From Scyliorhinus canicula (lineage: Eukaryota): a stretch of DNA of 64,000 nucleotides. The notes under the pieces were generated by a model. It was given only the letters and a program-made list of their open reading frames with translations. It was not told where the DNA came from and did not search any database. Where the stretch lies: NCBI RefSeq assembly GCF_902713615.1, contig NW_024055728.1:4057978-4121977 (forward strand), in the 5' to 3' direction. Both the position numbers and the translations under genes were made by a program. This document shows positions 45,223-62,112 of the stretch, piece by piece. How positions within the stretch are numbered: the first letter of the stretch is position 1; the number at the start of each line of letters is the position of its first letter.

Positions 45223-45631
45223 GAGTAATCACAACAAAAGCGGAGGCATGTTCCAGCAGCTGGTATAAAGCACCAAGAAAGAAATGCTTAAATTCCACAC
45301 ACTTGGAATATGCCCTCTGGAGAAGTTACTCTTGAAACAGCGAATCAACCAAGCCATATGTGGACTGTATTGTCCCAGTTGTGAGGTAACGCAGAAACTC
45401 TTGTGTTCAATGGTATCCTTCCTGGAGGCAATAACAAAACATGAATTCACTGTTGTGTGTTAGAATATTACTATTGAGTTTGGCAAGGTGTTTTTCTGTC
45501 CTCTGGAACTTTTACTAAAATGCTAAATGCGTCCTCAGAATGAGGAGCACTTCTCGGTTCTATTACGGGGTTTTGCCTAACCCCGTACTCGGAGGCGAAG
45601 AAATTATACTGAACTTCTTCATAGAAAGTGT

Positions 45632-46045
45632 CATACAGATAGACTCAAACATGCGTACATAGACAGAAGCACGCGCACACGAATGCACACATTTACATAC
45701 AGAAGCATACACATATATACACAACAGGTGTGCAGACAAAACAGGTACATGCACGTACACAAACACAGAGACGCACACATAGCACACATCACACACAGAA
45801 ACACACGTATACATCTACACACACATTCACACCCATATTCAACACGATCATCTACACACATATACACAGAAACATACGCACACAGAACATATACCACACA
45901 CATATGCACCCACATATAGTACACACATACACACATACAACATGCTCATACACATACATACCCACCCACGCATCACACACACACACAGAACAGTCATACA
46001 CACACGTATATGTGTGTGTGTGTGTGTGTGTTTGTACATACATAT
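45632..46045. repeat. Degenerate (CA)n tract switching to pure (TG)n
   Basis: Direct inspection. Confidence 0.85.
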
Positions 46046-46589
46046 ATTGATGGCTACACGCGCAAATAGAACCAATACCTGAAGGGAGCATTATGAAAAC
46101 CTGAGCACTGAGTAAACGTAATGACGAGGTGCTGAACTACCCAATTGCGCTTGAACTGGAAATGGAGTCGACATTGACCAGTAGGACAATGTCATTTCAT
46201 GCAATCTGGAAACTGACTTCCCATATTGAAAACGGACCTTCACTCTTTCTCGTGACCAACAGTACAGTTAAATAAAAGCAAATCCTCATCTAACTTCTGC
46301 AGACACTTCGGCAGCAACGTTGTTCTGACATCACAGGAATTGCATGTGTTCCACTTTGCGGCTGAATGCCACTTTTTGCATGGGCAAGTTGGGTGGTCAA
46401 TAGATTGTCGGCTAGCCAATCACACATCAATTCCCTGACGTATATGCCGCTTGGGTAATTGAACGTCACCTCATCTCGCACCTGAATGGTCGACACATTC
46501 TGAGATATTGAGCATTAGTTATTAGCCTCATCATCCGTTCTGCTTCAGACTTTGTCATGTCTGTTGGCAAGCCCTATATGAATCAAATT

Positions 46590-49400: not shown

Positions 49401-49560
49401 AGGTTCCAACCATGAACCAGGGATGAAGGTCAGTAGGGCATTGCCTTGGGTGGTCGGCTGTCGGTCTGTGTTGGACATTCTGCATGGCTGGATGCTATTT
49501 CTTATTTGTCTACACATTACTGACTTTGTAGAGAACAGCAGAATAACTTCATAGCCGTAC

Positions 49561-49671
49561 CTTTTTGTGATAAGTCATTCACTTTGTGTTCAACGATGAT
49601 TAGCACAATAACAACGAGCAACAATGCACTCAGGCAATGCCTCACCAAGGGCACCGAGTTGGGAGGGATGT
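49561..49671 (-). CDS. Transmembrane exon of LRC-like Ig receptor: (D)IPPNSVPLVRHCLSALLLVVIVLIIVEHKVNDLSQK(G)
   Basis: Acceptor ctttttattatcctttcatag|, donor AAG|gtacgg, 111 nt phase 1-1, hydrophobic segment with N-terminal Arg and closing Glu. Confidence 0.8.
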
Positions 49672-50059
49672 CTATGAAAGGATAATAAAAAGGGTTTAGT
49701 ATTTCGTTTGTCCCAGCCATCCCTGCACAATGGGAGTAACTCGGACACATCGATTCCCTCATCTATTGCAGGCTTGTAAGGCTGCTGACAGCTGAACTGT
49801 GTGAAAAACAAGTGGTGCACCGACGTGAATAGTGTCACACTCAACGTGGCCCAACGCACGGTTCAAGGGTGCAGGTTTATTAGCTGGATATCAGTATCGG
49901 GAAGCTTTGGAAGTGACCACTGGATTTGTGACAGAATGAAATCTGGGCAAAGGAATGCTCAGGAACGTTAGTTAGTATTAGTATTTCTAAAAATGTCTTT
50001 CCAAATGAACTTCCTTCTTTCTTTCAGCAATTGTCGATGTAAAACACAGAACATGACTG

Positions 50060-50345
50060 GGATTAGGGATGCTCCATCCTTTCACACTGGTGGGATTTCC
50101 GGTGCACCGGAAGCGCTCCCATGCCCAGGGATTTTGCCAACGGTGTGGGGCTGCCCACTTTATCCGGCTGGCGAGACGGGGAATCCTCCTGCCGGCTCGC
50201 ATGCGGCGTGCAGGAAAAATCGATGCAGCGGGACAGAGAACCCGGCCCGCTTGGGAACCGGCCATTTGCGTCTTTCTCAACCGCGGTGTGGGCTGACTGC
50301 AATGGAAAAATCTCAGTGACTGGCGGTGGGATGAGAGAATCCTCC
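50060..50345. mobile_element. Probable non-autonomous MITE-like element
   Basis: GC-rich insert with degenerate inverted ends (gggatgctccatcc ... gggatgagagaatcc). Confidence 0.4.
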
Positions 50346-51015
50346 AGCGAACAGCGCGCCGCCGCGAAACACGTGTCTGCGGAAGAAGAAAATCCCCTGT
50401 GATAATAACAACGATGAAAATCTGTAAAATGTATCTGTACCAAATATGGTTCGACCAATCAAGTTGCGTTTTGAACTCAAGCGCATTTCATTAAATAGCT
50501 GAAAAATAATACGGATCAATTTTGAGTTAATCAATACCTGCAGCTCACAGACATGCCCCTTCAATTCAATGGGCACTGCACATATATGTATGCCGATGTT
50601 GCGATTTCAAATGCTTATTTAAAACAATATCTGTTACATTAAATCTCAGATGTCGTTGGGTCTTCCTCGAAGAATAATTGCAATTCTACCACTGTGATTT
50701 TTCTCTTAAACCTGGTTTTAACTCTGGTCCACACTATCCCGGGAAAGCTTTGTTTTGTCACTGTTGGAAAACTACTCGCCTTCCCCCTGGTCCCGAGAGG
50801 AGCAAAGACGACCAGGTCATCAAGACAACAGACATTTCCATTGTTATAGATTGGACAGTATTTTCAAAGGCAGGTCCGAGCGTTGCGCTCAATCGGTATA
50901 GAAACACTTACAGTTGTTGGATGATGCATTTAATGCAGTGTAAAATTGGGCTGTATTGCTCTTCGACCTTAATTTGGAATATTACGTTACCGTTTCCAAT
51001 ACCTCACTTGTTTAC

Positions 51016-51039
51016 CAGTAATCTGGTGGGATTGCGCAT
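51016..51039 (-). CDS. Candidate 24-nt stalk mini-exon (D)AQSHQIT of the Ig receptor
   Basis: atttcag|ATGCG...ACTG|gtaaac, frame-preserving phase 1-1; weak pyrimidine tract. Confidence 0.35.
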
Positions 51040-51399
51040 CTGAAATCGATATCATTTCTGCCTCACTCACTGACGTGCCTGCAGTAATCTAGCTGCTTTG
51101 TTATCGCATCAAAGAATTATTCCGGCATTAATTAAGAACATTTTGCCCATCGTCTCGACAACGGCCCCGTGAATGAGAACCATCACATTGTGCATTTCCC
51201 CTGCCCCTTCCCCGCACATCTGTGTATTGCTTCTATGGGTAACGCCATCCAGTGGCCTCCTGAGTGCTTCGATTGAAACTGCCACACCGACACTTTGAGG
51301 CAGTGCATTGCAGAACCCGAACTTTGAGAATGTTGTGTTTCAGAATCATTTTGTCTGCGATTCGACAGATAATCTGCTCTCGTTCGTTGTGTGAGCTAC

Positions 51400-52100
51400 A
51401 CCTGGGCGAAGCATTGGTATTCTCGTATAACAGTAGTTGAACGTAAGCGCCCAGGTACAGCGGGCGATAAAGAAGTCAAATGGTATGTCTGCCTTCATAG
51501 TGACATAATTTGAGTACAGGAATAGGGATGTTTTACTGCAATCATATAGAGCATTGGTGAGGCCACACTTGGAGCATTCTGCGCAATGCTGGTGCCTTTA
51601 TCTGAGGGAAAATGTCATTGCTATCGAGCGAGTGCGCGACTGTTTACTTGGGTGATTCCTGGGATGATAGATGGGGAGGGATTAAGTTGCTTGGTATTAT
51701 ATTGATTGGCGTTAGGAAGATTGAAGGGGTATTATAGAAACAGAAAATGATAAAGACGAGACAGGGTAGAATCAGAATCAGTGGTCCAGTTGGAGGGCAG
51801 CCCAAAACTGATGGGCCACAGTTTGAGGATACAGATTTATATCTCAGCAGAAATATGTTTCCCGAGAGCTTGATAAATCTGTGGAATTCACTACCAAGGG
51901 AAGTATTTGAGGCGAAAACGTTGTGTTATTTCAAGAAGGAATTTGAAAGAGCACTTGGGACAAAAGGGATCAAGCATTCTGGAATGAAGGTGGTATCAGG
52001 ACATGCCATTTATGATCAACCATGATCGTAGTGAAAGATGGACCAGGTTCAAAGGGCCGAATGACCTCCACCTTCAACTGTTTGATATGTATATTTCTGT
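51400..52100 (+). mobile_element. Old CR1 3' part
   Basis: YRALVRPHLEH..., INLWNSLPREVFEAK. Confidence 0.75.
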
Positions 52101-52149
52101 GTATAATTATCGGCTCTGTCCAGCCACATTCTCATATTGTGCACATGCG

Positions 52150-52730
52150 TCAAGTCTCCTCTTGGACAGTTTTCTCCAAATGACCCTCCAATCTAACCTC
52201 ATAACTGACGTTTCTCATCCCTGGAACCATTCTTGTGAACCCCTTCTGCATTCCCTGAACCACAACATTTAGAATTGAACACAGTACTCCACCTGAGGTC
52301 AAACTGGTGTATTATATCAGTTCTGCATAACTCACTTGCGCTTGCACTCTACGCCGCTCGTAATAAAGCCCAGAATACTGTACTCTAAATTATATTTTCA
52401 CTCAACATTTCCTGCTAATCTCACTGATCAGTACACTTATGCACCCAAGTCAATTTGCTCCTGCACAACCTCAAAAATTGCAGCGTATGTCGTCTGCCCA
52501 TATGCTGGCAGCCGAAATACACGAATCTGCATCCCAATTGGAATTCGCCCCCCACCTATCTATTCACGAAACTAAGTTGTCAGTGTACGTTTCAGACTCT
52601 GGTCTGTCCTCCTCCCAATTTTCAATGATTCAGCGTTCTGCACCATTCATTTCGCTTAGAAATCCTTCCCCCTGAACAGCAATCAAGTCTGTCACAATAC
52701 ATAAATAAAGCAATCCTTCCAGAAACATTA
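52150..52730 (-). mobile_element. Old CR1 fragment
   Basis: Reverse strand PQVEYCVQF...RFTRMVPGM. Confidence 0.65.
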
Positions 52731-52989
52731 TTTGACCTTTAACTCTCTGATTTTCCAGATCACTGTGTCGTCGAATATTTGGAGTTCCCTGTTTAAGTTT
52801 TCATTTCCTGACTGTCACCCATAATTTGATTCGCGGCATACCATTTTTCAGAAGTTGTAAGAGCCAGCTCAGGGTAAGTTTCCCTGGATAGGGATGTTGC
52901 CCTTCTATCCGTTTCAGCAGTTTTATAAATGTAATCTAAAGTACAGAGTCCTGCTAAACTGGCAAATGTTCAATCGTTTATATACTTGC

Positions 52990-53158
52990 GGGGGCAGTAG
53001 ACTGGGCTAAATGGCTGGCTTTTAAAGCAGACAAAGGCAGCCCAGCAGCACGGTTCAATTCCCGAACAGGCGCCGGAATCTGGCGACTAGGGGCGTTACG
53101 CAGTAACTTCATTTGAAGCCGACTTGTGACAATAAGCGATTTTGATTTCATTTCATTT
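52990..53158 (+). mobile_element. Short SINE (second family)
   Basis: GGTTCAATTCCC B box, ...acttgtgacaataagcgattttgatttcatttcattt tail. Confidence 0.8.
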
Positions 53159-53790
53159 CCAATGTTTCAACAGTGTCCAATAGTTTTAACTATTGTTATG
53201 TGAAGGATAAATTGGTTTAACGACGGAAAAATTGCCGAACGTCGATTCAATTCAAAATAACTACTGTTTATATATTGTGGCCGATTCAACGAATGTATTC
53301 AACGCTGAAAATGAAATGATAATTTTCATCTCTCCCCTTGAGCAGCGTAGAATATATGCATCCAGTCATTACCGACAATGAACCCTACCTTCAATACAAT
53401 GAGGGGACGACTCAATTTCGGACAGGGGAGGACTTTGAATACAGAAATTGCCTGAAAGTTAGCGGCATCTAAATTGAAAAACTACAACACACGTTACAAC
53501 GTTTGGTATGAGTTGGCCATACTGCATTGTTGGTAGCCATGCATGTGACTTTAATTTGAACTTCCCCCCCCCCCCTTTTTAACGATGCCATCATTATTTG
53601 AAGATGAAAGATGAGGGAGTGGTTGATACTGGCATTTAAAGATGCATGGAAACGATAAGGCCACACAGTCGACCACCCGCACTTGTTCCTTGCAGATATT
53701 CACTAAATGTTAGATCATTTAAAAACTAAATTAGTCTTCTCTTTGACTACAGTCGAAACAATAGAAATACTTTGAGATAAAGAAACTTGC

Positions 53791-54123
53791 CTGGCATTGA
53801 CATATCCAGTTCCTGATCATTCTCAGTCACCACAACATCTTTGCTCCATGGAGAATCCGTCCAATTTCCTCCAACATGTGTCTGATACCGGCAGCCGTAA
53901 CTTCCCAGATAATCATTTCCCGTAACGTTGACTTTGAAGGTCGCAGTTCGCTGATCGCCATTCATTTGATGAGATTGTATAGGTTCCATGCTCCGGTTTC
54001 TGTACAAGTGGAACATGCCCCCGGAGGAGCGAATGTCCCCATTGCATGAAATAAGAACAATTTCGCCACTTGAAGTCAGACCGACATTTTTGAATTTGTT
54101 GATAGTCGGTTGAGAAAGTCGAT
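53791..54123 (-). CDS. Ig domain 2 exon (membrane-proximal, C2-type, LRC-like)
   Basis: Acceptor ttttattttcctgttacag|; (D)RLSQPTI...GEIVLISC...FHLYRN...ATFKV...GSYGCRY...WTDSPWSKDVVVT...SMP; 333 nt phase 1-1 using donor CAG|gcaagt. Confidence 0.85.
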
Positions 54124-54206
54124 CTGTAACAGGAAAATAAAAATCAGAAACTTTTTGAAGCACAATGACAAATAAAAAATCTTGCGTGCAGACAATGTTG
54201 ATGAAT

Positions 54207-54990
54207 GTTGGAGTTACAGATATATTGGATATCTGTGGTTAGTGCAGTGAGGCTTCAGGGTCTAGGTTAGTGTGTGCTTCACTACTGCAGTAGTGTTTTT
54301 TAAACTCCAGATTTGAAATACAGCAGAGGGGTCGATTAAAGCATCGTGAAAGCTTGGTAAATGGACCTGCATTTAAATTAAGAGGGTTCCTTTCAGGTTC
54401 GTGAATTAGAGGCATTGTGATCAGATGAGTAAGATGGAGTAGCTAATGGGAGGAGCCAGGGGTCCAAGTAGTCAGCTGTTGAGGTTTCCAGCTTTAGCTA
54501 TTGGCAGCAAAGGGAACTGATCATGTTTCTGAAGAAAGTCAGCCGGATGATCTGCAGTATTCTGACAATGTGCCAGGCATCTCTCTTTCGCGCAGTCTCA
54601 AAATATCTCTTGCTCCAAGTAGAGTATTCAAGACATCTCTAAGCAGCAAATACTCCTGAGTCTGCGAACTGTATTTAAAGGTGGATTGTGACCTGAGGTA
54701 GCCTTGCTGTTCGAGTGGAAGTCAAGGTACCAGTTAAGAGTTATTGTGTCACTGCATTGATTGGAATTGTTTAAGGAGTAATTGTAAGCTATTTTATTTT
54801 GGTATGTTAATTACATTTCAATACTGTATTCACAATTAAGCGTTTTTTATATACCGTATCCTTTAACTTCGGAAAATTCCCCCAGGAACAGGATATCCTT
54901 TCCTCACTATCTTACGAATTAATAAAGCAATACATATTCGGGATTCCTTATGGGATCGCAGAAACCGTTGTGGTTTTTGGGCTCGAATGC
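54207..54990 (+). mobile_element. Probable solo LTR in the intron between the Ig exons
   Basis: Begins TGTTGGAG; 3' part similar to the 42555-42700 element; AATAAA at 54921. Confidence 0.5.
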
Positions 54991-55055
54991 ATGCCCTATT
55001 CCTAAGTAATAGCAATGTCGATTAAGTGCTCAGATAAATTATTTCGATAAGCTAC

Positions 55056-55346
55056 CTCCAATATTTATCGGTATGGGATGGCTCAAATTTGACCTCCTCC
55101 AGCCTTTTTCGCTCCAATCCAAGCATTCACAACTGTAGATTCCTCCAATGGCCACGGTGTCGTTATATTCAAGGTACGTCCTGCACTGCCGTTTGTCATA
55201 ATCCCTTCGATTTGTTGGATTCCGGTTGTGATAATATTGGATCCTTACGGCAGGACATTGACAACGACAATTCAAAGTTATATTCTCTCCGGTAAAAAAG
55301 TGTCCGTACGACGGAAACGAAGTTAAGTCTGGCAGCGGTAAATCAA
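55056..55346 (-). CDS. Ig domain 1 exon (membrane-distal, Cys-rich)
   Basis: Acceptor ctgtttgacttcag|; DLPLPDLT...GENITLNCRCQCP...GGIYSCEC...SNLSHPIPINIG; donor GAG|gtagc; 291 nt phase 1-1. Confidence 0.85.
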
Positions 55347-55504
55347 CTGAAGTCAAACAGATCAGATATTGAATACATTTCACCAATCGGCGTGCCAACC
55401 ATACAGCAGACCTAATTATTGGTTTGCCAGTAAGTCGTCTCACATTGACATTACAGAAGGGTCGCAATGTTGCTCGATCCGAGCTTTTAATTTTGCAATA
55501 CATA

Positions 55505-55840
55505 TACAGTGAAGAAGGAGACAATTCGGTCCACTGAGTCTGCACCGGCTCATGGAAAGAGCAGCCGACCCAACGTCCACACCTCCACCCTCTTCCCACA
55601 ACCCAGCAACCCCGCCCAACACTAAGCTCAATTTTGTACACTATGGACAATTTAGCATGGCCAATACACCGAACCCGCACAGCTTTGGATTGTGGGAGGA
55701 AACCGGAGCACCCGGAGGAAACCCACGCACACACGGGGAGAATGTGCAGACTCGGCACAGACAGTGACCCAGCGGGGAATCAAACCGGCGTCCAAGAAGC
55801 TGTGACGCAATTGTGCTGTCCATAATGCTACCGTGCTGCT
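55505..55840 (-). mobile_element. HE1-related SINE
   Basis: Reverse complement starts gcagcacggtagcattatggacagc. Confidence 0.9.
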
Positions 55841-56654
55841 CTAATTACCATGTAATATGTGTTATTAACGATAGAGAATAAAGCTTCGTAAACTTTCTTA
55901 CAACAGAACTGGTTCCAAAACCAGAATATACTGGACAATCCCAACATCTTGAGAATTAAATTAGCTAAATATTTTCGTCTGGATGGCTCTTTGTCACAAG
56001 TGGAGATAACTGGAAATAGCACCAAATTTATAAAGTTCTGGGCATAGGACTTTGAGCAGCGCCTCAAGATAGGGAGCCTTCCATGTTGGCAAATTGACAA
56101 AGATATCCTGGACAGAAAGACAAAAGGAATGTAAATGCGTGTGATTATGGCTAATGAGTATGCTGGCCGTGGCACATTAAAGACCTCAGAACATGTGAAT
56201 TGCAAATCAAAGGTAAGCAGGATACAAAATGCAAATTGGAGCTGGGAAAAGATGGACATAATGGGATCGGAGGTCCGCCCAGTGCACCATCTCTGCTTTC
56301 CACTTCCCTCTTGGAGTGTGACAACGGTGTGCTATCTTAACTGCAACATAACTGGTTTGTTCAACTGTTTCAACGTTAAACACTGTCGTTCACACGTGGT
56401 TAGTTCTGAATGTTGTTGCCAAATTGAATCTACAAGAAGAGGGCAGGTCGCAATCATTGCTCCGAACATAACTGGAAGACCGTCTGAGAGCACAAACATT
56501 GCCCAAGCATTTGAGGAACGTTGCACGCTGATTTATTTAACAGGTTATTTCCACCTTGTGTTATTCTCCTCACCAAGAATGAAAGCAATTAAATGATAAT
56601 ACGTTAGCCCAGCAACTGCAATTATTGTCTTCAGCTTTATAATCGTTTACTCAC

Positions 56655-56687
56655 ATATGTCCATTCCGAGAAGCCAGCCGAAATAAA
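56655..56687 (-). CDS. 33-nt leader (signal peptide part 2) mini-exon: xYFGWLLGMDI(F)
   Basis: Strong sites cttttcttttcag| and |gtgagt; phase 1-1; joins in frame to the Ig1 exon. Confidence 0.7.
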
Positions 56688-57950: not shown

Positions 57951-59992
57951 GCACGTCACACTAAATCTAAATCTCAATCGAATCTACCACACCACCAATT
58001 ATCTTGCTGTTGCGAATATTCTGATCATTTGATCAACTGGGTAGGGAGATGGTTGGGTTGAGATGGTTGTTGGAAGTTGTGTCAATCTTGGAAAATTGGA
58101 AGGTAAGGTAACTAATTCGGTGTTAATCTAATGATAAATACTTCCATTGACATCAACCATACGACCATAAGACCATAAGACATAGGAGTGGAAGTAAGGC
58201 CATTCGGCCCATCGAGTCCACTCCGCCATTCAATCATGGCTGATGGGCATTTCAACTCCACCTCCCAGCATTCTCCCCGTAGCCCTTAATTCCTCGTGAC
58301 ATCAAGAATTTATCTATCTCTGCCTTGAAGCCATGTTGCGTCCCGGCCTCCACTGCACTCTGCGGCAATGAATTCCACAGGCCCACCACTCTCTGGCTGA
58401 AGAAATGTCTCCGCATTTTTGTTCTGAATTTACCCCCTCTAATTCTAATGATGTGCCCACGGGTCCTCGTCTCCTCGCCTAACGGAAACAGTTTATTTGC
58501 GTCCACCCTTTCTAAGCCATGTATTATCTTGTAAGTTTCTATTAGAACTCCCCTTAACCTTCTAAACTCCAATGAATACAATCCCAGGATCCTCAGCTGT
58601 TCCTCATATGTTAGACCCGCCATTCCAGGGATCATCCGTGTGTATCTCCGCTGGACACGCTCCAGTGCCAGTATATCCTTCTTGAGATGTGGGACCCAAA
58701 ACTGGACGCAGTACTCCAAATGGGGCCTAACCAGAGCCTTATAAAGGCTGAGTAGCACATCGCTGCTTTTATATTCCAACCCTCTTGAGATAAATGACAA
58801 CATTGCATTCGCTTTCTTAATCACGGATTCAACCTGCATGTTGACCTTTAAGGAATCCTCGACTAGCATTCCCAGATCCCTTTGTACTTTGGCATTATGA
58901 ATTTTTTCACCGTTTAGAAAGTAGTCTATGCTTGGACTCTTTTTTCCAAAGTGCAAGACCTCACATTTGCTCACGTTGAATTGCATCAGCCATTTCCTGC
59001 CCACTCTCCGAAACTGTCTAGATCCTTCTGCGGCCTCCCCACTTCCTCAGCACCACCTGCCTAACCACCTAACTTCGTATCATCGGCAAACTTCGCTAGA
59101 ATGCCCCCAGTCCCTTCATCCAGATCATTAATATATATGGCGAACAGCTGCGGCCCCAATACTGAACTCTCTGGGACACTGCTGGTCACCGGCTGCCATT
59201 CCGAAAAAGAACCTTTTATCCCAACTCTATGCCTTCTGTCAGACAGCCAATCCTCAACCCATGCCAGTAGCTCACCTCGAACACCATGGGCCCTCACCTT
59301 ACTCAGCAGCCTCCTGTGTGGCACCTTATCAAAGGACTTGTAAATCCAGATAGACCACATCCACTGGGTTTCCCTGGTCTAACCTACTTGTCACCTCCTC
59401 AAAGAATTCTAACAGGTTCGTCAGGCACGATCTCCCCTTACTAAATCCATGTTGACTTGTTCTAATCCGACCCTGCTCTTCCAAGAATTTAGAAATCTCA
59501 TCCTTAACGATCGATTCTAGAATTTTACCAACAACCGATGTTAGGCTAATTGGCCTATAATTTTCCATCTTTTGTCTTGATCCTTTCTTGAACAACGGGG
59601 TTACAACAGCGATCTTCCAATCGTACGGGACTTTCCCTGACTCCAGTGATTTTTGAAAGATCTCAACCAACGCTTCCGCTATTTCTTCAGCCACCTCCCT
59701 CAGAACTCTAGGACGTAGGCCATCTTGGCCAGGAGATTTGTCAATTTTAAGACCTTTTAGCTTTTTTTAGCACCATCTCTTTTGTAATGGCAAACATACT
59801 CAACTCAGCCCCCTGACCCTTTATAATTTTTGGGATATTACTCATGTCTTCCACTGTGAAGACAGACGCACAGTACTTATTAAGTTCTCCAGCCATTTCC
59901 TCGTCTCTTATGTATTGAAATAAACTTTTACTATCATTTCTTATATTATTGGTTAGCGTGCCTCCATATTTGATCCTCTCCTTCCTTAGTTG

Positions 59993-60322
59993 TAGAACAT
60001 AGAACATCGAACAGTACAGCACAGAACAGGCCCTTCGGCCCTCGATGTTGTGCCGAGCAACGATCACCCCACTTAAACCCACGTAACCCGTAACCCAACA
60101 ATCCCCCCATTAACCTTACACTACGGGCAATTTAGCATGGCCAATCCACCTAACCCGCACATCTTTGGACTCTGGGAGGAAACTGGAGCACCCGGAGGAA
60201 ACCCACGCACACACGGGGAGGACGTGCAGACTCCACACAGACAGTGACCCAGCCGGGAATCGAACCTGGGACCCTGGAGCTGTGAAGCATTGATGCTAAC
60301 CACCATGCTACCGTGAGGCCCC
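59993..60322 (-). mobile_element. Young HE1-type SINE inserted in CR1 ORF2
   Basis: Full head gggcctcacggtagcatggtgg and (TTCTATG)n tail. Confidence 0.95.
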
Positions 60323-62112
60323 ATTGTCTCTTTGTTAACCTCTGTTTGTTTTCGTAGCCTTCCCAATCTTCTGTTTTCCCAGTGCTTTTGGCATCTTTAT
60401 TGTATCACTCTTTTTCTTTGATACATTTCCTGACCTCCTTTGTCAGCAATGGCTGTCTAATCCCTCCCTGGATAATCTTTCTTTTCATGGGGATGAACCT
60501 CTATACAGTGTCCTCAATTATGCATACAAACTCCTGCCATTTTTGCTCTACTGTCTTCCCCACTACGGTCTGCTTCCAGTCGATCTTCGCCAGTTCCTCT
60601 CTCATGCCCTCGTAATTATTTAACTGTAACGCCATTACATCCGATTTTGCCTTCTCTCTTTCAAACTGCAGATTGAACTCAACCATATTATGATCGCTGC
60701 TTCCTAAGTGTTCCCTTACTTTAAGATCTTTTATAAAGTCTGGTTCATTACATAGCACTAGGTCCAGAATAGCCTGCTCCCTTGTGGGCTCCATGACAAG
60801 CTGTTCCAAAAAGCCATCTTGTAAGCATTCCATGAATTCATTTTCTTTGGATCCACTGGCTACGTTATTTACCCAATCCACCTACATATTGAAGTCCCCC
60901 ATGATCACCGTGACTTTGCCTTTCTGACATGCCTTTTCTATTTCCCGGTACATGTTGCGCCCCTGGTCCTGACCACTGTTAGGAGGTCTGTACATTACTC
61001 ACATTATGGTTTTTTTTGCCTTTGTAGTTCCTCAATTCTACCCACACAGACTCCACATCATCCGACCCTATGTAGTTTAGTGCCATAGATTTAATTTTGT
61101 TCTTAACCAACAAGGCAACCCCACCCCCTAGGCCCACCTCCCTGTCTTTTCGATAGGTTGTATATCCTTGGATGTTTAACTGCCAGTCCTGAACCCCCTG
61201 CAGCCATGTCTCTGTGATGCCTGCCACCTCATAATCATTCACGATGATCTGTGCCATTAGTTCGTCTACTTTGTTACAAATGCTACGAGCATTCAGGTAA
61301 GGTGCCTTAATGCTAACTTTCTTATCATTACAGATATTGGAAGTCCTAAGATGTCCAAAGTTATCCTTCCTTTTTGTTGCATTCCTAGTCTGCCTCAAGC
61401 TTAAATCCAGCTGCCTACATGTTATCCTTCTGCGTATCTTGCCATTTAACTCCATGCCCCCTGTCGCTTTCACTTTCCCTTCCCCCCAACTCTGAAATTT
61501 AATGTCCTACTGACCACCCTATTTTTCCTCTTCGCTAGAGCACTGGTTCCAGATCAGTTCAGGTGGAGACCGTCCCAACGGTACAGATCCCACCGGTTCC
61601 AAAACTGATGCCAATGTCCCATGAAGTGGAACCCCTCTTTCCCACCACAATCCCTTAGCCACGTGTTTACTTCCCTAATTGTCTTATCCCTATGCCAATT
61701 GACACGTGGCTCGGGCAGTAATCCGGAGATTATGACCCTTGAGGACCTGTGTTTCAATTTTCTTCCTAGTGCTTGATAGTCCCCGAACAGATCCTCCACC
61801 CTAGCTTTACCTATGTTGTTAGTCCCAACGTGGACCATAACAACTGGATACTCCCCCTCCCGCTCCAATATCCTTTCAAGCCGGCCAGAGATGCACCCTG
61901 GCACCGGGCAGGCAACACACCATGCGAGTCTCCCGATCCGTCTTGCATAGGATACTATCTGTCCCCCTAATTATAGAATCCCCTATAACAACTACTTGTC
62001 TTTTTTACTCCCCCTTCTTGAATGGCCTTCTGTACCATGGTACCGTGGTCAGCTGGCTCATCCTGTCCAGAGCCCTTTTCTTCATCCATACAGGGAGCAA
62101 GAGTCTCATACC

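Follow-up and report, generated by a model that had tools for sequence, protein, structure and literature searches.

A transcribed catshark gene for a probable LRC-like two-Ig receptor from a shark-and-ray family of paired receptors

We analysed a 64,000-nucleotide (nt) stretch of the genome of the catshark Scyliorhinus canicula (assembly GCF_902713615.1, contig NW_024055728.1, positions 4,057,978 to 4,121,977 of the forward strand), called here the window, in which a first-pass annotation made from the sequence alone had proposed a receptor gene with two immunoglobulin (Ig) domains of the type encoded in the leukocyte receptor complex (LRC). The locus in question (49561-56687) is the body of a transcribed catshark gene with exons far beyond chance. 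The proposed two-Ig receptor gene proved to be intact and transcribed, with its leader split and each Ig domain in an exon of its own. By sequence comparison the gene is a member of a large shark-and-ray family of putative paired receptors. The findings are best explained, and in our judgement probably so, by a transcribed activating-type LRC-like two-Ig receptor of an elasmobranch paired family. The gene, LOC119960732, would be an activating-type member of this multigene family, encoding a type I leukocyte-type receptor in which a signal peptide split between exons is followed by two Ig domains of the C2 type and by a transmembrane (TM) exon with a buried Arg.

Results

Gene structure and existing annotation

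Direct reading of the minus strand gave four exons, all in phase 1 and all free of stops on translation. The second leader exon (leader-2, 56655..56687) is a signal peptide mini-exon of 33 nt that encodes (V)YFGWLLGMDI(F) and lies between a polypyrimidine-cag acceptor and a gtgagt donor. The exon of Ig domain 1 (Ig1 or D1, 55056..55346) has an AG acceptor and a GT donor and carries the paired CxC motifs CRCQC ... SCEC. The exon of Ig domain 2 (Ig2 or D2, 53791..54123) has an AG acceptor, a C strand without Trp (FHLYRN) and a GC donor (ccag|gcaagt), and the TM exon (49561..49671), again with an AG acceptor and a GT donor, encodes an Arg close to the outer face (in LVRHCL) and, at a distance of 17-18 residues, Glu-His, after which comes a short basic/polar stretch. 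The first-pass annotation had claimed four exons with good splice sites, and the positions, the phase and the open frames stood, as did its quoted translations when each exon was translated; the Ig2 donor is GC and not GT, which is a minor but legitimate splice class. The GT donor of the TM exon suggests a further small exon, and unspliced read-through of the TM exon would reach a stop 14 codons on (open reading frame (ORF) 49517..49762).

The gene had been described as hidden, a view that did not survive since NCBI already annotates the locus as LOC119960732. A protein search with the Ig1 open frame returned P0001, "uncharacterized protein LOC119960732" [Scyliorhinus canicula], a protein of 243 amino acids (aa) on the window's contig (C336) that is 100% identical to the window over the leader-2, Ig1 and Ig2 exons. 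In P0001 the 33-nt mini-exon is preceded by a first leader exon (MFKTLIFLPF) and followed by Ig1 and Ig2, after which the frame runs past the GC donor for 14 codons to a stop. The read-through extension (53747..53790, minus strand, within ORF 53747..54163) forms the C-terminus of P0001 and reads …GKFLYLKVFLLFRL before the stop. The first leader exon lies outside the window, ~10.6 kb upstream (L027:3280, minus strand); its 31 coding nt begin with an ATG and are followed by a gtgagt donor.

Transcript evidence

Part of the Ig1-Ig2 stretch is contained in 12 public runs, four of which (X1, X2, X3 and X12) were aligned to window positions 49460-55459; they were taken as RNA from their small size and the depth of X1, which was ~90-110 over Ig1 and 2-12 over the intron. 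The Ig1|Ig2 joint (54123|55056) was present in contigs of X1, X2 and X3, which represent three studies. Loose contig ends at 55346 (80 nt in X1, and also in X2) proved to be the reverse complement of the leader mini-exon, giving the leader-2|Ig1 joint in two studies. A 732-nt contig of X3 spanned Ig1, Ig2 and TM, and its 53791|49671 joint coincides with the predicted GC...AG sites. Variant letters assigned the contigs of X1 and X3 to a paralog, C341a (on contig C341), and those of X2 to the window copy. The leader-2|Ig1 and Ig1|Ig2 junctions are shown for the window copy because the X2 contigs match it. Junction-spanning transcripts, proposed in the first-pass annotation as a check, were thus found at these two junctions for this copy, and at the Ig2|TM junction for C341a only. 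Run X12 gave low-depth repeats and some intron, with no exons or joints. One X2 contig joined leader-2 directly to 55243 (minus strand), a possible alternative acceptor within Ig1 (gtaag|g) whose use would skip 103 nt and shift the frame; this single contig may reflect an unproductive splice variant or a contig or assembly artefact.

Domain affinities

Single domains scored weakly against Pfam, with Ig1 matching Ig_2 at 8e-5 and Ig_3 at 4e-4, and a single Ig2 sequence matched LILRB4 at 1.8e-4. Since the single domains, including both Ig1 matches, fell below the curated Pfam cut-offs, family profiles were built for D1 and D2 and searched against PDB. With the D2 profile the best 22 chains were all PIR-B or LILR (PIR-B 1e-17, LILRB2 5e-12, LILRB1 2e-10, and also LILRB4, LILRA6, LILRB3, LILRA2, LILRA3 and LILRA5). 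KIR3DL1, NKp46, OSCAR, CHIR-AB1, FcαRI and LAIR1 followed at lower ranks among scattered VEGFR1 and titin chains. The sole FcR-family chain was FCRLA at 8.7e-3, about 18-20 bits below the LRC matches, and antibody chains came at ~5e-3 or weaker. Judged by these profiles, D2 sits with the LRC proteins, squarely in the LILR/PIR group. The D1 profile gave full-length alignments to LRC proteins, namely PIR-B (8e-11), LILRB2 D3 (4e-10, 43 bits) and KIR3DL1 D2 (7e-9, 39 bits), spanning profile positions 3-95.

The ectodomain was modelled with AlphaFold (AF2) at a predicted local distance difference test score (pLDDT) of 89 and a predicted template modelling score (pTM) of 0.74. Foldseek against PDB ranked OSCAR first (E 2.4e-11, 25-26% identity, template modelling score (TM-score) 0.54-0.60), then LILRB4, NKp46, PIR-B and KIR, ahead of FcγRII. 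Against the Swiss-Prot part of the AlphaFold database (AFDB) the order was NCR1, OSCAR, TARM1, A1BG, LILRB4, IGSF1 and then FCRL5, with FCRL1 also listed. The predicted two-domain fold is closest to LRC ectodomains, and the combined profile and structure searches support LRC-encoded proteins (PIR-B, LILR, KIR, NKp46, OSCAR, TARM1, A1BG and IGSF1) as the nearest solved and Swiss-Prot relatives of the receptor. The domain profile and structure comparison that the first-pass annotation had called for therefore came out on the LRC side for D2 and for the fold.

An elasmobranch family with paired forms

A word-based homolog search with P0001 retrieved only P0001 itself, and the family set was taken from an exhaustive HMMER search, which gave 413 homologous proteins at E<=1e-3 with E down to 1e-139. 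Thirty matches were looked up, and all of the upper-ranking 20 (20/20, P0002-P0027) were from elasmobranchs. Among the looked-up matches were sharks (Scyliorhinus canicula, S. torazame, Heterodontus, Cetorhinus, Pristiophorus, Hemiscyllium, Mustelus, Carcharodon, Heptranchias and Stegostoma) and rays (Narcine, Pristis, Amblyraja and Mobula). The first looked-up match outside the elasmobranchs was an IGSF1-like protein of the coelacanth Latimeria (E 1e-16), and others were an A1BG-like protein of the catfish Tachysurus (E 1e-12), IGSF1 of the bird Eurystomus (E 3e-11) and an A1BG-like protein of the chimaera Callorhinchus (E 7e-11). Homologs carried automatic names such as 'uncharacterized', LILRB3, TARM1-like, IGSF1-like and A1BG-like, and one ray protein was named FCRL5.

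Two-Ig members of the family came in two types. Those of the inhibitory type have an uncharged TM and a long tail with motifs resembling the immunoreceptor tyrosine-based inhibitory motif (ITIM), namely LLYATL, VVYGEV, ITYATL, SMYADV and VTYASL. These forms (P0008, P0012, P0017, P0023 and P0031) are from other elasmobranchs. Those of the activating type have a short tail and an Arg-bearing TM (…AIVRLCLCALVIIVMLIIIVEHF…, …AIRLCLGALVV…) close to the window's LVRHCLSALLLVVIVLIIVEH. The Arg is present in P0014 and P0029, also from other elasmobranchs, and P0007 and P0024 have the same type of TM with Gln and His, respectively, at the Arg position.

Strands B and F of D1 carry CxC pairs (CRCQC … CEC) that are invariant throughout the shark family. 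Their arrangement points to a predicted extra disulfide beside the canonical one, not seen in LRC or FcR alignments. In rays we also observed giant proteins, P0002 (Narcine, 2368 aa) and P0003 (Pristis, 3218 aa), made of 12-15 tandem copies of the domain pair and recalling the multi-domain LRC relatives of the IGSF1/A1BG type.

Transmembrane segment and leader exon as family markers

In the window's LVRHCLSALLLVVIVLIIVEH the Arg is followed by Glu at +17 and His at +18. P0029 shows the same R...E/H pattern, and in P0014 the Arg is retained and position +17 is Gln. By tblastn the TM exon aligned to the TM of P0007 (58% over 26 aa, E 7e-6) and to that of P0014 (E 8e-6), with the alignment reaching the Gly at the exon end. 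This TM resembles those of GPVI and FcαRI in its R-x-C-L start and in the acidic residue that lies 17 positions beyond the Arg. Activating LRC receptors have been described with an Arg near the outer end of the TM, one or more acidic residues at its C-terminal end, an Asn three positions before the Arg (NxxR) and a DYT motif upstream (PMC6557307). The predicted window TM shows the outer Arg and the C-terminal acidic residue of this activating subtype. The DYT motif was not found upstream of the window TM; homologs have QYL there, and TDAIVR or VTAIR at the Arg.

The second leader exon is 33 nt in the window gene and in C341a and exactly 36 nt in a further paralog, LOC119960770 (C341). The second leader exon of KIR and LILR genes is ~36 nt. 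The signal peptide exons of FcR and FCRL genes follow a 30/21 bp rule, with a 21-nt second exon in FCRL1-6 and FcγRI (PMC2413239). The catshark leader does not follow this rule, with 31 coding nt plus 33 nt here and a 36-nt second exon in the paralog. Nor do all Ig domains belong to the FcR/FCRL subtype, with one marginal FcR-family match for D2 and an ambiguous D1.

Paralogs and selection in the catshark genome

The window gene and C341a are 95.5-97% identical in their exons and ~91% in their introns, with 12 synonymous and 11 non-synonymous codon differences over 254 codons. The TM exon is 95.5% identical to that of C341a, with ~90% in the flanking intron, and two paralogs conserve the leader-2 mini-exon at 97-100%. 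The lower divergence of exons than introns, together with the codon differences, points to purifying selection on each of the four exons, so that the mini-exon and the TM exon too are under constraint. That C341a is the other haplotype of the window gene was ruled out by its introns, which are only ~91% identical, and by a neighbouring gene without a counterpart near the window.

The exons could in principle be chance open frames or a dead relic and not a gene, a reading for which the sub-threshold Pfam scores of the single domains might be cited. It is refuted by the protein model at 100% identity, the spliced contigs of three studies, the homologs down to E 1e-139 and the stronger conservation of exons than introns, and we regard its probability as negligible.

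The paralog search proposed in the first-pass annotation was productive. In the genome the Ig2 exon recurs in nine copies whose protein identity is 90-100% and in about ten that are more distant, Ig1 copies are fewer, and the D2 profile found at least 98 related Ig exons, with clusters on C29, C336, C342, C30, C22, C19, C6 and C20. One copy, C336b (C336:4267256-4274372; L033/L034), lies 160 kb from the window gene and is 99-100% identical to it in all four exons, with single-base indels in the TM exon and three in Ig1; the copy could be a pseudogene of very recent origin or a false duplicate left by an unpolished assembly. At six other loci (L004-L009, on C614, C128 twice, C167, C127 and C30 at 3.19 Mb) the Ig2 exon and its downstream intron are ~91% identical to those of the window gene, and the similarity ends 9 bp upstream of the Ig2 acceptor with no D1-like frame within 1.4 kb upstream. 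Such a pattern would fit a subfamily whose 5' half differs, or possibly D2-only genes.

Linkage to LRC framework genes

The LRC framework comprises TTYH1-LENG8-LENG9 and RPS9-TSEN34-MBOAT7-TMC4-LENG1-CNOT3-PRPF31-TFPT (PMC6557307), and linkage to such genes had been suggested as a further check. None was found on the window's scaffold. Framework-type genes were located elsewhere, with CNOT3 on C23 at 1.81 Mb, TTYH exons on C15, C18 and C342, and SAC3/GANP on C2 and C18; a genome search with Prp31_C gave no match anywhere and was uninformative. Most family members are on unplaced scaffolds, which makes the synteny comparison weak. On C342, also an unplaced scaffold, related Ig exons at 654-686 kb lie ~90 kb from a Tweety (TTYH) exon (C342:772473-772661), a proximity that is a possible remnant of LRC-type linkage.

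Weighing an activating LRC-like receptor

Several results weigh against an activating LRC-type membrane receptor. The annotated protein P0001 has no TM exon, and so the annotation omits the membrane anchor; a tblastn search downstream of 49561 for the terminal exon or exons after the TM, made with tail sequences from four activating homologs, gave no credible match. None of the runs used for the transcript evidence is recorded as RNA, and the sole Ig2|TM contig, from X3, bears the variant letters of C341a and not those of the window copy. NxxR was not found in the window TM, where N-S-V-P-L-V-R puts the Asn at -6. Pfam genome searches for Tweety, Not3 and SAC3_GANP placed no framework gene on C336 or C341. 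The D1 profile also matches FcεRIα (34 bits), FCRL4 (34 bits) and FcγRIIb (32 bits) at 3e-7 to 1e-6, and FCRL5 at 4.8e-25 and 91 bits summed over many domains. The claim of an LRC-type receptor thus stands on D2, the structure and the Arg-bearing TM, and falls short in the FcR/FCRL likeness of D1, the NxxR motif and the framework linkage.

The D1 scores bear on a rather unlikely alternative, in which the family is not LRC proper and derives from a common ancestor of LRC and FcR/FCRL receptors, or is the counterpart of teleost LITR, with an FcR/FCRL-like distal and a LILR-like proximal domain; a family of such chimeric appearance would be older than the LRC/FcR split or lie outside it. The FCRL5, FCRL4, FcεRIα D1 and FcγRII D1 matches stand beside those to LILR D3 and KIR D2, FCRL5 and FCRL1 are among the AFDB structural matches, one ray homolog was automatically named FCRL5 and LRC synteny was not found. 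Xenopus FCRL-like genes, moreover, also use TMs of the NxxR type (PMC2413239), and for teleost LITRs a distant kinship with both FcR/FCRL and LRC receptors has been reported and a position at or before the LRC/FcR split argued (PMC4810170). D2, however, matches LRC proteins almost exclusively and with the bit-score lead given above, the LRC alignments of D1 cover the whole domain whereas the FcR ones end at positions 74-78, that is, after the first three quarters, the second leader exon measures 33 or 36 nt as opposed to 21, and the best structural matches are LRC members.

A second alternative concerns the product of this copy alone. The window copy might mainly yield a TM-less secreted or decoy form with a short hydrophobic tail, or be a decaying duplicate, with the membrane receptors encoded by its paralogs. 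Secreted LRC members exist, as in LILRA3 and A1BG, and the NCBI model of the locus runs through the Ig2 donor, a weak GC site, to a stop. The Ig2-TM contig matches C341a, and the near-identical neighbour C336b has 1-bp indels in Ig1 and TM. On the other hand, the window's TM exon is intact, has proper AG/GT sites and is better conserved than its flanks, and C341a has the same GC donor and acceptor as the window gene and splices them in the X3 contig. In addition, an X2 contig, from the window copy, ends exactly at the Ig2 donor with 6 unplaced letters, which is weak evidence that this copy also splices there, and no X2 or X3 contig covers the read-through stretch (53747..53790). We consider it very unlikely that the TM-less form or decay accounts for the locus. 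For the activating receptor that we favour, leaving the weak GC donor unspliced would give the TM-less 243-aa protein of the NCBI model as a second product.

Proposed mechanism and adaptor

In the proposed mechanism the ectodomain would bind a ligand, and the TM Arg would pair with the TM Asp of an FcRγ-type adaptor dimer carrying immunoreceptor tyrosine-based activation motifs (ITAM), leading to ITAM signalling on the model of LILRA, OSCAR, GPVI and FcαRI. The ITIM-bearing relatives would give the opposing signal. The catshark genome contains two TM exons of the TCR_zetazeta type, one on C6 (C6:201010333-201010413, minus strand; L042), which we take to be FcRγ-like, and one on C7 (C7:44542922-44543008, minus strand; L041) that reads …CYILDGILFVYGIIITALYLKLR and was called CD3ζ-like. 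With these ζ/γ-type TM exons the genome has candidate adaptors of the kind that the mechanism needs. Adaptor pairing and signalling, like TM splicing of the window copy, the 3' end of the gene and expression in leukocytes, are inferred.

Repeats in the window

A CR1-like long interspersed element (LINE), noncoding with respect to the gene, occupies 58252..61904 on the minus strand, with frames resembling a reverse transcriptase, an endonuclease and a GDSL esterase (Pfam RVT_1, Exo_endo_phos and Lipase_GDSL_2 on its ORFs) and a related fragment at 62-63 kb. The first leader exon is so distant because this element fills much of intron 1. Interspersed repeats resembling short interspersed elements (SINEs) lie in introns at 53000-53160 and 55560-55830. 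Depth over the former rose to as much as ~1000 in each of the four runs, which means that this repeat is abundant genome-wide or transcribed elsewhere. At 45560-46090 a long imperfect simple repeat of the (TG/CA)n type gives rise to spurious Cys/Val/His/Thr-rich open frames on both strands.

Discussion

As in LILR and PIR, the C strand of the catshark receptor has no Trp, the leader is split and its second exon is small, each Ig domain is encoded by a single phase-1 exon and the TM has an exon to itself; the shark family also shares their pairing of Arg-TM and ITIM-tail forms. It differs from them in that identity is ~17-25%, the shark receptor has two domains as against two to six, its D1 has extra CxC cysteine pairs, and neither NxxR nor linkage to the framework genes was found for it. 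Like OSCAR, its top structural match, and like GPVI and FcαRI, it combines an ectodomain of two Ig domains with an Arg-bearing TM and a short tail. The shark TM differs in having no NxxR Asn and the shark interdomain geometry is predicted; orthology to OSCAR is not implied.

Other vertebrate systems offer partial parallels. Teleost LITRs, compared here by description, are likewise a polymorphic paired fish family with stimulatory and inhibitory members and are kin to both FcR/FCRL and LRC receptors (PMC4810170), and the mixed affinities of D1 and D2 give the same kind of picture for the shark receptor. The nearest teleost match seen, the catfish 'A1BG-like' protein at E 1e-12, is nevertheless far below the elasmobranch matches. 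FcR and FCRL share the split leader, the paired ITIM/adaptor logic and the D1 matches, but differ in the 21-nt second leader exon as against 33 or 36 nt; D2 has almost no FcR-family matches and the D1 alignments to that family are partial. The KIR-related proteins of Xenopus are all activating, with FcRγ-type TMs and ectodomains weakly similar to mammalian ones (PMC6557307). They have NxxR, comprise four genes and have no inhibitory partners reported, whereas for the shark family the count of related exons is at least 98 and ITIM forms exist.

Published surveys place the origin of such receptors later. Akula et al. 2014 searched many shark genomes, reported no FcRγ, FcRL or C2-only LRC-type genes and placed the origin with bony fish (PMC4016189). 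Guselnikov & Taranin 2019 regarded amphibians as the most basal lineage with LRC-related genes and the LRC relatives of bony fish as uncertain (PMC6557307), and a 2026 survey listed the KIR/LILR cluster as mammal-specific (PMC13262535). The FcRγ-like adaptor exon that we found in the catshark stands in contrast to the survey that reported no shark FcRγ homolog (PMC4016189). We found no description of the shark family in the literature, a search that did not extend to subscription journals. The gene is thus automatically annotated and apparently undescribed, and the novelty lies in its recognition and the evidence for it, not in its existence. The first-pass annotation had stressed the novelty of such a receptor in a cartilaginous fish; the published surveys do report absence, but the pipelines have already named homologs LILRB3, TARM1-like, IGSF1-like and A1BG-like. 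The value of the finding is tempered to that extent, as several proteins of the family already bear automatic names. It is of interest to comparative immunologists and involves no new principle.

Family members occur in many sharks, rays and a chimaera. Tentatively, and with less confidence than we place in the activating LRC-like receptor itself, we raise the possibility that the elasmobranch family descends directly from the set of receptors that gave rise to both LRC and FcR/FCRL. If so, a complete paired system with LILR-like domains, FcRγ-coupled Arg-TM receptors, ITIM partners, a 36-nt second leader exon and the FcRγ adaptor would have been present in the last common ancestor of jawed vertebrates. 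The published view, by which its components are mammal-specific or first appeared in bony fish, would then be overturned. Whether paired leukocyte receptors arose at the base of the jawed vertebrates can now be tested directly, and the family provides concrete candidate natural killer (NK) or myeloid receptors for cartilaginous fish, where none have been characterised.

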